Virus record (IMG/VR): IMGVR_UViG_3300023184_000024
Coordinates: 288,755 to 352,754 of that record
Strand: one strand, 5' to 3'
DNA length: 64,000 nt
Made by a program: the position numbers and the translations under genes. Every line of letters starts with the position of its first letter. The first letter of the stretch is position 1. This document shows positions 31,110 through 60,517 of the stretch, piece by piece. Under the pieces are notes generated by a model. It saw only the letters and a list, made by a program, of their open reading frames with translations. It searched no databases and had not been told where the DNA came from.

Positions 31110-31141
31110 AAAAACCCTACGTAATGTAGGGTTTTTCTTTT
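31110..31141 (+). terminator. Rho-independent terminator
   Basis: AAAAACCCTAC-gtaat-GTAGGGTTTTT-CTTTT. Confidence 0.85.
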
Positions 31142-31179
31142 GTTGCTTAAAAACAACACCAAATTTTTCAGCATTTTTT

Positions 31180-31232
31180 GGTTGACCGAATATTCCCAAT
31201 TTGCTATAATACTTGTATAGTAATTAAAAAGG
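31180..31232 (+). promoter_or_regulatory. Early promoter cassette, copy 1
   Basis: GGTTGACC-N17-TATAAT, then AAGGAG. Confidence 0.85.
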
Positions 31233-31240
31233 AGTGAGAG

Positions 31241-31516
31241 ATGAAGGCACTTAACACCTGGATTGATCAGCAAAATCGTTGGGCTAGTTTGTTCAAAGGT
31301 CAACGCACTGCACCTTTGTATGAAATTCAAACTGCCGAAGGCAGAAAACGTGTGGCCGAAGCCATTGACTGTGCTCTGAGCCCGGAGAATTTGAGTTGTG
31401 ATGGCGAACTTCCTATGAGCCAAGTCCGTGCTCGCTATCGTTCGCTCACATCAGCCGCCCAAGATCTAGTAAAATTAGACCCCAGCATGGCTCAATTCAT
31501 GTACGAATTTGGTTGA
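31241..31516 (+). CDS. Early hypothetical protein
   Basis: Promoter and SD; LSPENLSCDGE motif. Confidence 0.75.
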   Translation: MKALNTWIDQQNRWASLFKGQRTAPLYEIQTAEGRKRVAEAIDCALSPENLSCDGELPMSQVRARYRSLTSAAQDLVKLDPSMAQFMYEFG

Positions 31517-31563
31517 CCAATAAATTGTCTTTTGCTATAATACTTGTATAGTAATTAAAAAGG
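31511..31563 (+). promoter_or_regulatory. Early promoter cassette, copy 2
   Basis: GGTTGACC-N17-TATAAT; 31531-31563 is identical to 31200-31232 (33 nt). Confidence 0.85.
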
Positions 31564-31573
31564 GGTAAAAACT

Positions 31574-31858
31574 ATGAACGGTTGGGAAAATAGTAGAGGG
31601 TATCTTACGACAATGAAGGCGGAGGCTCACGACCGCAATCCAAATCTCAGCCGTCGTAATGCCAACCCCAAGGTCAAGCTACAGTTTGACCCCGAGGACG
31701 ATATTGGATGTTTTCATTGTGGCACTTTCCGCAGTTATAATTTTGAATTTGACAGCAATTATTGTGACCCTTGTAACAAGTGGTTGGAAGGTCTTTGCAA
31801 GGATGCTGACTGTCCCTTCTGCCCCAAGCGTCCCAAGTACCCAAAATATCCCGGTTGA
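31574..31858 (+). CDS. Early Cys-rich hypothetical protein
   Basis: CFHC, CDPC and C..CPFC motifs. Confidence 0.6.
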   Translation: MNGWENSRGYLTTMKAEAHDRNPNLSRRNANPKVKLQFDPEDDIGCFHCGTFRSYNFEFDSNYCDPCNKWLEGLCKDADCPFCPKRPKYPKYPG

Positions 31859-31883
31859 CCGATAATTACCGATTTGCTATAAT
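31853..31883 (+). promoter_or_regulatory. Early promoter cassette, copy 3
   Basis: GGTTGACC-N17-TATAAT with the TTTGC extension. Confidence 0.85.
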
Positions 31884-55653: not shown

Positions 55654-56688
55654 CTAACTTGCAGTATCGAGCGTAGATTTAATATCTGCAATCATGCGGG
55701 CCACCCAAGCTGTTTTCATTGTTAGATCATAGTTGTGTTCAACAATGGGCTGACACAGTTGATAAATCTTGGCTTGTTCTTGTGTCTGCAAATATGCAAC
55801 TTGCTCTAACATCAATTTTACCCTGACCGATATATCGGGCTCCGAGTCGTAACTTTCATCAATGATGCCATGAAATGTTTGAAATCCAAGCTTTCTTAAA
55901 TTATGCAGATAGTATTGCCCACCGGCAACCACAAACAATCTACGACACATCATTGGTTTTATAATTTTTTCAGTAAAAAAACTAAAACTATTTTCACTTT
56001 GTGTTTCGGCAATTAAACTGTAGGCGCTGTGATTATAAACATCAATTGGCACCAATTGACTTAGACTAACAATGGTAGAATCTACCACAACTTCGGAACC
56101 TGTAAATGTAATTTCATTTTCAGGCAAATCAACAGGCCAAATGAATTGGCTCGACGAGTAATTTCTAAGATCAAGATCCACGTTGGTTGGATAATAAGTT
56201 ACTATGTTCTGACTGTGGTCCATTGAGTCATAAACCATTGATCTATGCACCTTGCGCCGGCCCAACAAAACATCAAAGAATTTGTCCTTGGGCAACACGT
56301 TGCTGACTTTGGGCAACCAATTTTGCTGTGTGTGATAAAAATCAGTGGTGCTCCAAAAGAAATAATAATGAAACTTGACCTGACTATGCCCGGGAGTCCA
56401 ATTTAAAATGCCGGCAATGTAAAAAACTACGTTTGGCCTATCAAATTTTTTGCACCAATGATCGTCGATGAATTCGGGCAAGAACACCAAGGCCTTGCTG
56501 GCATGCGACACTATTTTTTCCAGTTCAGATTCAGTGTCATTGCCAAAGTCTTGTGTTTCCCACAAAGCAACACACTCATTGCTGGGCAATGACAACCAAA
56601 CGTCAAGATCATTGACTATGTTGCCATCAACGCCGGTTTCTTCAAACCAGTATTGTAGATTTGGATTGCTGATATAAATGTGTTTCAC
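55654..56688 (-). CDS. GT10-like ('TEK' motif) putative glycosyltransferase
   Basis: IAET..FTEKIIKP..GFQTF..DESYD. Confidence 0.55.
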   Translation of the reverse strand: MKHIYISNPNLQYWFEETGVDGNIVNDLDVWLSLPSNECVALWETQDFGNDTESELEKIVSHASKALVFLPEFIDDHWCKKFDRPNVVFYIAGILNWTPGHSQVKFHYYFFWSTTDFYHTQQNWLPKVSNVLPKDKFFDVLLGRRKVHRSMVYDSMDHSQNIVTYYPTNVDLDLRNYSSSQFIWPVDLPENEITFTGSEVVVDSTIVSLSQLVPIDVYNHSAYSLIAETQSENSFSFFTEKIIKPMMCRRLFVVAGGQYYLHNLRKLGFQTFHGIIDESYDSEPDISVRVKLMLEQVAYLQTQEQAKIYQLCQPIVEHNYDLTMKTAWVARMIADIKSTLDTAS

Positions 56689-56751
56689 AGTGTATTTACT
56701 GCTGGTCGTTATAGTAAGTGTAAATCAACAACAACGGGTGCTAACTACATA

Positions 56752-57459
56752 ATGATTGAATTTATAACAATGTTGGTAATGACACACATTACCATTCTAT
56801 GTGTCACATTGTATCTGCATCGTAGCCAAGCTCACAAGTCAGTTACGTTCCATCCAATTGTTGCACACGCCATGAGATTTTGGCTATGGATGACTACCGG
56901 ACAAATTACCCGACAATGGGTAGCGGTACATCGCAAGCATCACAGATTCACAGAAGTACACGGTGATCCACACAGCCCGCATGTGTTTGGTTTTTGGCAT
57001 GTGCTGTGCAAAGGTGCTGTGCTGTATCATACTGCCAGTAAAGACTCGGCAATGGTGGCACAATATGGTGCTGGCACACCCGATGACTGGATTGAACGCA
57101 ATGTTTATTCCAAGCATAGTAGACTGGGCATTGCGTCAATGCTGTTGATCAATATAGCTGTGTTTGGTGCATGGGGACTACTAATATGGGGCATACAAAT
57201 GATATGGATCCCATTCTGGGCCGCCGGTGTCATCAATGGAGTGGGACATTGGCTGGGGTACCGCAATGGCGAAACCAAAGACCACAGTCAAAATATCAGT
57301 CCCTGGGGTATCGTTATTGGCGGAGAAGAACTACACAACAATCACCACATTAACCCTGCCAGCCCCAAATTGAGTAGCAAGTGGTGGGAGTTTGATATAG
57401 GATGGGCGTGGATACGTGTGCTAGAGATGGTCAAGTTGGCCAAGGTGCGCACAGTTTAG
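56752..57459 (+). CDS. Fatty acid (acyl-CoA/lipid) desaturase, DesA-like
   Basis: His boxes HRSQAH, HRKHH and HNNHH; DPHSP. Confidence 0.93.
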   Translation: MIEFITMLVMTHITILCVTLYLHRSQAHKSVTFHPIVAHAMRFWLWMTTGQITRQWVAVHRKHHRFTEVHGDPHSPHVFGFWHVLCKGAVLYHTASKDSAMVAQYGAGTPDDWIERNVYSKHSRLGIASMLLINIAVFGAWGLLIWGIQMIWIPFWAAGVINGVGHWLGYRNGETKDHSQNISPWGIVIGGEELHNNHHINPASPKLSSKWWEFDIGWAWIRVLEMVKLAKVRTV

Positions 57460-57490
57460 TGATCATTCACTAGAGAAAAATACCAAAAGA

Positions 57491-57521
57491 TGTTGCACTG
57501 CAACATAAATAATGTTACAAT
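57491..57521 (+). promoter_or_regulatory. sigma70 promoter overlapped by a palindromic operator (PhaR-box-like)
   Basis: TGTTGCA-C-TGCAACA palindrome at 57491-57505; TTGCAC-N17-TACAAT. Confidence 0.6.
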
Positions 57522-57526
57522 AGAAC

Positions 57527-57575
57527 ATAGGGTGCTGAATAGGTCGGGCCCTGTAGTAAACTCGCTTAATAGGAG
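57527..57575 (+). ncRNA. Structured 5' UTR, second copy of the hsp20-type leader
   Basis: ATAGGGT-G-CTGA..TCGG-GCCCTGT, then CTCGCT-taat-AGGAG. Confidence 0.6.
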
Positions 57576-57581
57576 AAAATT

Positions 57582-57854
57582 ATGTTTACATTAGACGCAA
57601 CAATCGACGCCGTACAAACCGGTAAAAAACAATTTGTCAAGACATTTGTCCAGAACGAAAAAATTGCAGACGCAATGAACACTTTCATTGATGAGCAAGC
57701 CTCTTACACAAAGAAAGCTGCCAAAGTTGGTACAGATACATTTGCTACATTAGCCAGCGAAATGGTTAAAACCACACAAGAAGCCATGAAGTTTGACTAC
57801 ACCAAGTTTGGTGAAGGTATCATGAAGGCTTATACAGCTACTACCAAGAAGTAA
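57582..57854 (+). CDS. Phasin-like small helical protein
   Basis: 90 aa, Ala/Lys/Thr-rich amphipathic helices, strong SD, TGC-N3-GCA box upstream. Confidence 0.5.
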   Translation: MFTLDATIDAVQTGKKQFVKTFVQNEKIADAMNTFIDEQASYTKKAAKVGTDTFATLASEMVKTTQEAMKFDYTKFGEGIMKAYTATTKK

Positions 57855-57872: not shown

Positions 57873-57901
57873 TAGACTAATAAATCCTGTTTGTGTATAA
57901 T
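57873..57901 (+). promoter_or_regulatory. sigma70-type promoter
   Basis: TAGACT-N17-TATAAT with TG extension, ending 7 nt before the ATG at 57908. Confidence 0.6.
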
Positions 57902-57907
57902 AGATAC

Positions 57908-58150
57908 ATGAACAGGATTTTTCTTTTGTGCTTGCTATTTCTAGTTGGGTGCGCTCAGGTACCCAGAATGCCACCGGATGTGGCAGCCATGCCCGACGAC
58001 TGCGCAAATCGACAAGCCATCATCAGATGGTTAGATTCTTTGGTTCAGGTTCCTAAATCAACTTTTGAAAATGAGCATGAATATGAACAAACTCGCAGTA
58101 AAATCAAAGCTCGCATTTGGAGCATTCGTTACAATTGTCAGCGTGTTTAA
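57908..58150 (+). CDS. Small lipoprotein
   Basis: Lipobox LVGC; two further Cys. Confidence 0.65.
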   Translation: MNRIFLLCLLFLVGCAQVPRMPPDVAAMPDDCANRQAIIRWLDSLVQVPKSTFENEHEYEQTRSKIKARIWSIRYNCQRV

Positions 58151-58421
58151 TGTAGGATGCGCCAATTACTCGCCGGTGATGAGTTCACACCTGGACTCTT
58201 TTCAAATCGATTGTAGAATTAAAGAACAGCAAGTTCGATTTTTGCAGTCAATGAGAAACACAAACAATGAAAAGTTCAATGCCAGGGCCACTAATGCAGT
58301 GATGCCCTGGACAATGATCACTGACTCATCAAATTACCAGCATCGACAAGGTGTACAAACTGGATACAACGACTGGGTCATCAATCAACTGTTGCTTAGA
58401 TTAGGATATGATTGCCCATGA
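58083..58421 (+). CDS. Putative lipoprotein
   Basis: Hydrophobic N-terminus with VGC; DC..QVRFL..C pattern similar to the previous gene. Confidence 0.55.
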   Translation: MNKLAVKSKLAFGAFVTIVSVFNVGCANYSPVMSSHLDSFQIDCRIKEQQVRFLQSMRNTNNEKFNARATNAVMPWTMITDSSNYQHRQGVQTGYNDWVINQLLLRLGYDCP

Positions 58422-58981
58422 AAAAACATTACATTGCAATTGCTGTGTTGATTTCAATGCCAGCTTGGTCAAACAATTGTGTGATGCAGGAACGTACCGT
58501 TACTCAAAATGATGTAAAAATTTTAGAGAGAAGCACCATACGTCGTGATGTGGTCCCTGCACAAAACGGGCGTAAGTGCATAGTGGATTTTCGTGCTCGA
58601 GTAGGCAGTGAATGGCACACAGCATTTGGTGAACACATCTGGCCTGGAGATCGTCCCAGTGAAGAAGCCTGTTTGGTTGCAGTAAAACGAGCCGAAGACA
58701 GTGTTCGCGAACGTGTGGGTCGTACATCATCAATGAGTGAAAGAATTTTGGTTTGTAAAGATCGTCCCGAATTAGAAACACTGCGCCAAACCCAAATTGG
58801 CACAGTTGGTGATGCAGGGCAGTTTAGAATCCATCCCAATTACCCCAATCGATTTTATCACAACGGTGCCCAATGCCGTTGGTTTGTAGAACCAATGTTC
58901 AATGGTAGAGATATCCAAAATTTCCAAGGTGTGGCCTGCGAAGTTCGGGACAACAAGTGGGTAGTTGTGGACAAATTTTAA
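58418..58981 (+). CDS. Secreted Cys-containing hypothetical protein
   Basis: Signal peptide; six Cys. Confidence 0.65.
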   Translation: MKKHYIAIAVLISMPAWSNNCVMQERTVTQNDVKILERSTIRRDVVPAQNGRKCIVDFRARVGSEWHTAFGEHIWPGDRPSEEACLVAVKRAEDSVRERVGRTSSMSERILVCKDRPELETLRQTQIGTVGDAGQFRIHPNYPNRFYHNGAQCRWFVEPMFNGRDIQNFQGVACEVRDNKWVVVDKF

Positions 58982-58982
58982 A

Positions 58983-59011
58983 TTGACTTGTTATTGTAAT
59001 CCTTGTATAAT
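58983..59011 (+). promoter_or_regulatory. sigma70-type promoter
   Basis: TTGACT-N17-TATAAT. Confidence 0.75.
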
Positions 59012-59043
59012 TTGTAGTATATTGTTAATACTGAAAGGTAATC

Positions 59044-59172
59044 ATGAGTAAGTTTGTTATAGGTACCGTTTTTGGAATAGTACTGGCAACTGTGGGGTTC
59101 GGTGGCATTGCCCGAATGTTGGACCGAGGGGTAGACACTGTTAAAACTCAGACTCAGGAGATAGCAAAATGA
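59044..59172 (+). CDS. Small membrane protein (42 aa, not in the ORF track)
   Basis: MSKFVIGTVFGIVLATVGFGGIARMLDRGVDTVKTQTQEIAK*; AAGGT SD. Confidence 0.7.
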   Translation: MSKFVIGTVFGIVLATVGFGGIARMLDRGVDTVKTQTQEIAK

Positions 59173-59291
59173 AACTGGCAGTGACAATTTTGTTGGTAAG
59201 TTTGTTGACCGCTTGTGGAACCATTGGCGGAGCAGTAAGTGGAGCCGGTGATGATTTAAAAAAGGCCGGCGATTGGGTTAAAACTCGTTAA
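59169..59291 (+). CDS. Entericidin EcnA/B-like lipoprotein (40 aa, not in the ORF track)
   Basis: MKLAVTILLVSLLTAC-GTIGGAVSGAGDDLKKAG..; AGGAG SD; ATGA overlap. Confidence 0.7.
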   Translation: MKLAVTILLVSLLTACGTIGGAVSGAGDDLKKAGDWVKTR

Positions 59292-59300
59292 GGAAACATT

Positions 59301-59876
59301 ATGAAAAATTTTATTTTATTGGCAATTGTATCAACACTGGCAGCCTGTAGTTCTGCACCCAAGGAAGCTTACGAACGCCGCTCCTATGAAGAAAACAAGC
59401 GGCAAGAGCAGTATGCAGAACGTGCAATTGATCAAGCCCCAAAATGGATGACTGAACTGCCCAAGTCTAATTCGGCTGTGTACCAAAACGGTACCGCTGT
59501 CAGTTCTGACATGAGCATGAGTGTCAACAAAGCAAAAACCATGGCATTTGGCAAGATTTGTATGAGTGCTGGCGGCCGGGTCAATCAACAAAGCAAAGTT
59601 TACCGAACAGACAGTGAAAATGCCAGCACTGAATTTTCAGAATTGGCAGTCAAGAGTTTTTGTCCCAATGTAGACATTACCGGGGTTGAAGTAACAGACA
59701 CCAAGGTCATTGCAGAAGGTGGTAGGTTTAGAACCTATGTACTACTGGCCTTGCCCACAGGCAATGCAAACCCGATGGCACGTGAAAGAGATGCAAAAGA
59801 ACAGCGTAAATCAGCAGAAACACGCAGTCGAGAAGCATTCAAAGAGTTGGACAAGAATGAAGAAAAACTTCGGTAA
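59301..59876 (+). CDS. Lipoprotein (LPP20-like)
   Basis: Lipobox LAAC; PKWM..G.A.S.D..A...A pattern. Confidence 0.65.
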   Translation: MKNFILLAIVSTLAACSSAPKEAYERRSYEENKRQEQYAERAIDQAPKWMTELPKSNSAVYQNGTAVSSDMSMSVNKAKTMAFGKICMSAGGRVNQQSKVYRTDSENASTEFSELAVKSFCPNVDITGVEVTDTKVIAEGGRFRTYVLLALPTGNANPMARERDAKEQRKSAETRSREAFKELDKNEEKLR

Positions 59877-59938: not shown

Positions 59939-60517
59939 ATGACACAAAGCAAGGACACTGAGGAAGATTACGTAAGCCCGGGACAAAGCCTGCTGGAAGC
60001 AGGCATGTATACACTCATGGGACCCATTGACGATGAGCTAGTGAAGCCTGTGATCGAGTGGATTTTACATGCCAATCATGTTGTTAAAAGAAAGAAAAAA
60101 GAACTTTTATTAATGATATGTAGTGAAGGTGGTGACATGAGCTCGGCATTTGCATTAATTGATGTCATGCAAAGTTCAGGCATACCTATTAAAACAGTGG
60201 GACTTGGTCAAATTGCATCGGCTGGACTGTTGATCTTTTTGGCTGGTACCCCGGGCCGCAGGACCTTGACTCCCAACACCAGTATATTAAGTCATCAATT
60301 TAGCTGGGGTAGTGACGGCAAAGTGCATGAGTTATTTGCTACCATGAAAGAGTTTGAATTAACTCAAAAGCGCATGATAGCGCACTATGTTCGATGCACC
60401 AATCTCAGCGAAGATCAAATACGTAAAAATCTATTGCCGCCACATGATGTTTGGCTTGACGCAAAAGAAGCATTGAAGCTCAACATCTGCGATCATATCA
60501 GTTTGGTAAATCGTTAA
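59939..60517 (+). CDS. clpP: ClpP-like protease subunit
   Basis: ICSEGG, GQIASAG (Ser), ILSHQ (His), DVWLDAKEAL..CD. Confidence 0.85.
   Translation: MTQSKDTEEDYVSPGQSLLEAGMYTLMGPIDDELVKPVIEWILHANHVVKRKKKELLLMICSEGGDMSSAFALIDVMQSSGIPIKTVGLGQIASAGLLIFLAGTPGRRTLTPNTSILSHQFSWGSDGKVHELFATMKEFELTQKRMIAHYVRCTNLSEDQIRKNLLPPHDVWLDAKEALKLNICDHISLVNR

Follow-up and report, generated by a model that had tools for sequence, protein, structure and literature searches.

Does a jumbo phage of freshwater place one of its own genes under the control of the repressor with which bacteria adjust phasin synthesis to the formation of PHB storage granules? The question is raised by a perfect palindrome in front of a small gene in the virus record IMGVR_UViG_3300023184_000024, where a first-pass annotation, made from sequence alone, had described TGTTGCA-C-TGCAACA overlapping the -35 hexamer TTGCAC of a promoter with a 17-bp spacer, with a late TAAATA in the spacer. 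It noted that PhaR represses phasin genes via TGC-N3-GCA-type boxes and is titrated by PHA granules, inferred that the phage gene is wired to the carbon-storage status of the host, which would suggest that the phage exploits PHA granules, and called the product, tentatively, phasin-like. We analysed the last 64 kb of the record (positions 288,755 to 352,754, here called the window, to which coordinates refer unless genome coordinates are stated). The complete record comprises 352,754 bp with direct terminal repeats, is rated 100% complete and has a G+C content of 42.4%.

The observation itself holds in every element. The palindrome at 57491-57505 extends by one pair to a perfect 17-mer, ATGTTGCA-C-TGCAACAT, and the locus is organised as follows:

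57457-57472, no strand assigned: palindrome TAGTGA-TCAT-TCACTA, centred about 63 bp before the predicted start site and overlapping the stop codon of the desaturase gene
57473-57489, plus strand: A-rich tract directly upstream of the box, a possible UP-like element by inference only
57490-57506, no strand assigned: putative PhaR-type operator ATGTTGC-ACT-GCAACAT, spanning about -38 to -22 of the promoter
57493-57498, plus strand: -35 hexamer TTGCAC, formed by the left half of the box
57505-57511, plus strand: ATAAATA (TAAATA at 57506-57511), a candidate T4-type late-promoter element overlapping the right edge of the box
57516-57521, plus strand: -10 hexamer TACAAT, 17 bp after the -35, with the predicted start site near 57528
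57527-57554, plus strand: conserved stem-loop at the predicted 5' end of the mRNA, with an AUAGG loop and invariant GC/GGG
57556-57575, plus strand: conserved leader block GTAAACTCGCTTAA followed by the Shine-Dalgarno sequence AGGAG (57571-57575)
57582-57854, plus strand: gene for a 90-aa, 10-kDa protein (pI 8.8)
57882-57927, plus strand: intrinsic terminator, a 17-pair hairpin followed by a T-run

The gene lies between a fatty-acid desaturase gene (56680-57459) and a run of small genes with lipoprotein or secretion signals, followed by a ClpP-like gene (57893-59876 and 59939-60517). The phage carries at least two ClpP-like genes, a weaker match in the window and a strong one (272 bits) at the genome start (genome 195-788). 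The terminator makes the gene a single-gene transcription unit, and the same hairpin follows the homologue in a related locus (L002). A promoter-like site (TAGACT-17-TATAAT, 10 of 12 matches; 57873-57930) lies inside the terminator hairpin, and its predicted start coincides with the ATG at 57908 of a lipoprotein-like ORF with a signal peptide ending LVGC, which may be a leaderless gene nested in the terminator.

Is the box more than a chance palindrome? TGTTGC-N3-GCAACA occurs once in the 352,754-bp genome, and a weight matrix built from related phages scores the site at 28.1 bits, compared with a best score of 20.2 bits in ten shuffled genomes. We collected relatives of the gene. The protein has 986 close homologues in metagenomes, and a scan of 1.84 billion cluster representatives returned 178 representatives at E <= 0.001, nearly all 70-120 aa long. 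By contrast, tblastn against 50,697 deposited phage records found no homologue, and 185,579 species genomes yielded only three hits, all on MAG contigs that look like phage DNA, so that the gene is not a recent copy of a host phasin; the family is phage-restricted. Eighty IMG/VR loci carry the gene, on contigs of up to 364 kb with syntenic desaturase, ClpP and radical-SAM neighbours; one genome flagged as unpublished (G053, loci L125 and L136) was left out of every analysis.

In most of these loci the box is found at the same distance from the -10, and TAYAAT or TATACT is present in 64 of 65 unique upstream regions at fixed spacing to the box. Among 50 distinct sites, arm positions are 80-96% conserved, whereas the three central positions read R (35 A, 12 G), N (an even spread) and Y (39 T, 9 C). 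The strict core TGC-N3-GCA is present at the same place in 57 of 82 loci, compared with 2.2% of random genome windows of the same size, while about a quarter of the loci have a degenerate or differently spaced box, including N4-spaced variants. Each of five near-complete related genomes has exactly one perfect box, always at this gene. Homologues of only 32-38% identity still carry a box, but (i) between -35 and -10 (L159), (ii) just after the -10 over the start site (L160, L161) or (iii) over the -35 (L162), which points to selection for repression rather than to inherited sequence. An A-run precedes the box in most relatives. The palindrome at 57457-57472 is unique in the phage genome and present before many homologues; its reading as a site of a host regulon was rejected for Polynucleobacter, in whose genomes TAGTG-N6-CACTA occurs at 9 sites against 49 for the control pattern, and it remains unexplained.

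These data also bear on the possibility that the palindrome is a nucleic-acid hairpin, for instance a minus-strand terminator, and not a protein site. The terminator scan does list it on the minus strand as a 7-pair stem with a 3-nt loop followed by CTTTTGG. However, no minus-strand gene runs into it, the arms are conserved as sequence with invariant TGC and GCA, many asymmetric variants break the pairing, and the same box occurs in either orientation before phasin genes of the candidate host. We regard this reading as very improbable.

Is the box a PhaR operator? The motif TG[N]TGC[N]3GCAA, contained in the DNase I footprint of Herbaspirillum seropedicae PhbF (PMC3206438), is matched exactly by the phage box. 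Footprints of Bradyrhizobium PhaR gave TGCRNYGCASMA, which the box fits at 11 of 12 positions (A at the S position), and TGCGCTGCAACA is listed there as a site (PMC6201568); the R-N-Y centre of the phage sites is the same. As one related phage contig of 6 kb had been binned into a Polynucleobacter MAG, we searched 13 Polynucleobacter genomes for the 15-bp pattern and found 12 sites, compared with one for the reversed control. Nine of the 12 lie directly upstream of proteins that pass the Pfam Phasin_2 cut-off, with E-values from 1.6e-8 to 2.9e-28. Ten of the 13 genomes encode PhaR, and their phaR genes carry box-like sites of 19-22 bits upstream, scored with a matrix trained only on phage sites, which fits PhaR autoregulation. 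The Polynucleobacter PhaP1-like promoters L095 and L101 share the phage layout, in which the box supplies a TTGCAN -35 followed by 16-17 bp and TATAAT. As a caveat, TTGCAC matches TTGACA at only 3 of 6 positions, so that the simple sigma-70 scan does not list the phage promoter.

Polynucleobacter-like Burkholderiales are candidate hosts only, and a betaproteobacterial host is likewise a candidate only. Apart from the binned contig, the only link is a similar G+C content (43.5% against 42.4%). Phage-like contigs with this gene and its promoter (L085, L086 and L087; JBBAKF010000115.1, NZ_JBBAKG010000031.1 and NZ_JBBAKG010000110.1) are binned into a Polynucleobacter MAG and a Haliscomenobacter MAG, and the latter, which contains two of the related contigs, has neither PhaR nor Phasin_2. 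At least that bin probably contains stray phage DNA, and binning is therefore unreliable.

Could another dimeric regulator, phage-encoded or a different host factor, bind a palindrome that only resembles PhaR boxes? The first-pass annotation had named one observation that might speak for a phage-specific site, the looser TGTTG-N8-CAACA at 31141-31158, and we examined it. It is a different element, which lacks the GCA half and belongs to a family of at least 14 stereotyped strong promoters, GG-TTGACC-N-TTTGCTATAAT-ACTTGTATAG with an extended -10, then AAGGAG and ATG (window 31141-31210, 31513-31541 and 31855-31883; genome 1359, 2099, 2549, 116726, 117031, 284042 and others). Several of these have a TGTTG...CAACA inverted repeat upstream, and they are probably the early promoters of the phage for host RNA polymerase. 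Two locus-specific repeats without a known host partner, TAGTGA-N4-TCACTA here and CAGTAGAAACCAYGAG at a second box described below, show that unidentified factors may act at these promoters, and the N4-spaced variants may be read in the same sense. Nevertheless, the site corresponds to the boxes in front of Polynucleobacter phasin and phaR genes and fits two experimentally derived PhaR consensus sequences, and a phage regulator would more likely have more than two sites in 352 kb. We consider a different regulator unlikely.

The second site, at genome 1282-1298 and thus outside the window, is the only other one in the genome that scores above all shuffles (22.3 bits). This box (TTATTGCAATGCAACAT) directly abuts an ATAAATA element upstream of a conserved 54-aa gene without a Pfam match (genome 1070-1234, minus strand) and is flanked by two copies of CAGTAGAAACCATGAG. 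The arrangement recurs in related phages: of 48 distinct upstream regions of this gene family in IMG/VR, 21 have a box of at least 12 bits abutting a TAAATA element and 42 have a conserved AGTAGAAAC motif. The phage has no PhaR (PHB_acc_N) homologue and no intracellular PHB depolymerase, PHB esterase or synthase (PhaC_N). The lack of PHB enzymes, together with the multiplication of one or two sites per genome by phage replication, would be compatible with boxes that act mainly as decoys, soaking up PhaR and derepressing the host's own PHB regulon, with control of the 90-aa gene being secondary. A pure decoy would, however, not need placement relative to the core promoter, which is maintained or re-created in distant relatives, and we consider this reading very unlikely.

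Further elements surround the box. ATAAATA is strongly avoided genome-wide (38 copies) and is the rarest of the permutations of its letters, yet 16 of the 38 copies (42%) lie 8-60 nt before an SD+ATG in sense, compared with 8.2% for permuted heptamers, and TAAATA is present in 43 of 65 unique upstream regions of homologues. We first took the late reading to be unsupported, since TATAAATA and TAAATA are depleted genome-wide; in view of the positional test, the remark on a late element is plausible and ATAAATA a candidate late-promoter element. The full TATAAATA scores 0 of 7. The stem-loop at 57527-57554 comprises 11 pairs, 8 of them with compensatory changes; 95.7% of cells are paired, and covariation amounts to 0.516, compared with 0.267 in shuffles (0 of 500 reach the observed value) and at most 0.119 when the partners are slid. 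No Rfam family reaches its gathering threshold, the ROSE_3 thermosensor giving a weak full-length match (57526-57587; 23.8 bits against 43). We infer that the stem-loop stabilises the mRNA or binds a factor. A weak pairing of the conserved CUCGC block with the Shine-Dalgarno sequence (CUC/GAG) is possible: the mean probability that the latter is paired is 0.81, compared with 0.62 in controls, a modest and not conclusive signal for occlusion of the ribosome-binding site.

Is the protein a phasin? This part of the proposal is not established. Phasin_2 (PF09361) scores 16.3 bits against a cut-off of 24.9. Phasin models are the only families that recur among 86 diverse family members, Phasin_2 in 22 (best E-value 1.2e-4) and TIGR01841 in 9, with all hits below threshold. 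Profile-profile comparison by hhalign gives no support, with a probability of 7% against 9 Polynucleobacter phasins and 3% against 34 Phasin_2 domains, and a profile search of PDB sequences hit only designed helical bundles. The AlphaFold2 model (pLDDT 87.4) predicts three helices (4-22, 26-70 and 73-88), which are strongly amphipathic (mean hydrophobic moment 0.34, z = 4 against shuffles; 0.30-0.36 for Polynucleobacter phasins). Foldseek against PDB returned nothing at E <= 0.001 and a shape search of the ESM Atlas no hit. A wide structural alignment (VIA-align) placed the solved phasin 5ip0 at rank 20 (5ip0_A, Z 7.1, rmsd 2.3 Å over 70 residues), tied with hundreds of unrelated helical hairpins, so that the fold is compatible but unspecific. 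Language-model neighbours included three PHA-related families at scores of 0.84-0.88, which we treat as leads only. In one distant branch of the family (contigs carrying P0139), a 194-211-aa protein with weak alpha/beta-hydrolase hits, a possible PHB-active esterase, is encoded directly upstream of the homologue on the same strand. A phasin-like function is therefore suggested mainly by co-regulation and physical character, not by homology.

Taken together, the first interpretation is partly supported: its operator half is well supported by comparison, its phasin half is not established, and exploitation of PHA granules remains inference. We consider it likely that the palindrome is an operator for the PHB-responsive host repressor PhaR (PhbF/AniA family), placed over the -35 of a promoter for host RNA polymerase. 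In this view, free PhaR in a host cell without nascent granules would sit on -38 to -22 and block the promoter and also the abutting ATAAATA element, whereas in a cell that is making granules PhaR would be drawn onto the polymer surface, as described for the titration mechanism in PMC3079617, and the promoter would open. With its 5' stem-loop, strong ribosome-binding site and own terminator, the mRNA would then yield the 10-kDa amphipathic helical protein in quantity, and the second, weaker box would gate the 54-aa gene, giving the phage a small two-gene PhaR regulon without a phaR of its own. The analysis demonstrates the sequence elements, their conservation and their correspondence with boxes at Polynucleobacter phaP and phaR genes, but that PhaR binds the box, represses the gene and is released in the presence of PHB is inferred from sequence comparison alone. 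That the protein binds or acts on granules, as a phasin-like coat or a helper of PHB mobilisation, is inferred more weakly and remains tentative.

A more far-reaching reading is possible but doubtful, namely that a cosmopolitan clade of freshwater jumbo phages senses PHB deposition through the borrowed repressor and switches on a two-gene regulon whose main product is a previously unrecognised, phage-only type of granule-associated protein. Such a protein might remodel granules, for example by displacing host phasins or PhaR or by priming depolymerisation, and free stored carbon and reducing power for phage replication in nutrient-poor water. PhaR/phasin control is a textbook bacterial circuit, but we found no report of a phage phasin or of a PhaR-operated phage promoter in the open-access literature, to which our search was confined. 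If PhaR does bind, the locus is a clean example of a lytic phage gating accessory genes on the carbon-storage state of its host through a repressor titrated by a polymer surface. Given the abundance of the family, the effect could matter for carbon flow in lakes. The finding also provides an uncharacterised 90-aa family, and a 54-aa one, with a concrete and readily testable hypothesis, and the box may serve as a marker for predicting PHB-forming hosts of uncultured phages.

How does the locus compare with known systems? With the phasin families Phasin_2 and TIGR01841 and the solved PhaP of Aeromonas hydrophila (PDB 5ip0), the protein shares the size class, the helical amphipathic build and a short basic C-terminal tail, but all scores are below the curated cut-offs and it is half the length of the phasins of the candidate hosts. 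PHA-related auxiliary metabolic genes on phage contigs (phaC, phbB and others; PMC12013262) likewise link phages to host PHA metabolism. Those are, however, enzyme genes identified by homology, none of which this phage has, and neither a phasin-like gene nor PhaR operator wiring is reported there. The closest counterparts are the PhaR/PhbF-repressed phaP promoters of PHB-forming bacteria (Herbaspirillum seropedicae, Bradyrhizobium diazoefficiens, Cupriavidus necator, Paracoccus denitrificans, Rhodobacter sphaeroides), with which the locus shares a TGC-N3-GCA inverted repeat that overlaps the core promoter and matches the published consensus sequences, a layout identical to Polynucleobacter PhaP1-like promoters, and a small, predicted amphipathic helical product that is inferred to be highly expressed. 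It differs in that the promoter sits in a 352-kb lytic-type phage genome without phaR or PHB enzymes, the product does not pass any phasin model, the leader carries a covarying stem-loop and a phage late-type ATAAATA element abuts the box. Finally, phage genes are placed under host nutrient-sensing regulators in cyanophages, where pho boxes for host PhoB precede pstS/phoA, and in both cases a lytic phage would borrow a host transcription-factor site so that an accessory gene follows the physiological state of the host. Here the gene is not a recognisable copy of a host gene, and the signal would be carbon storage in PHB granules, read through a repressor that is titrated by a polymer surface.
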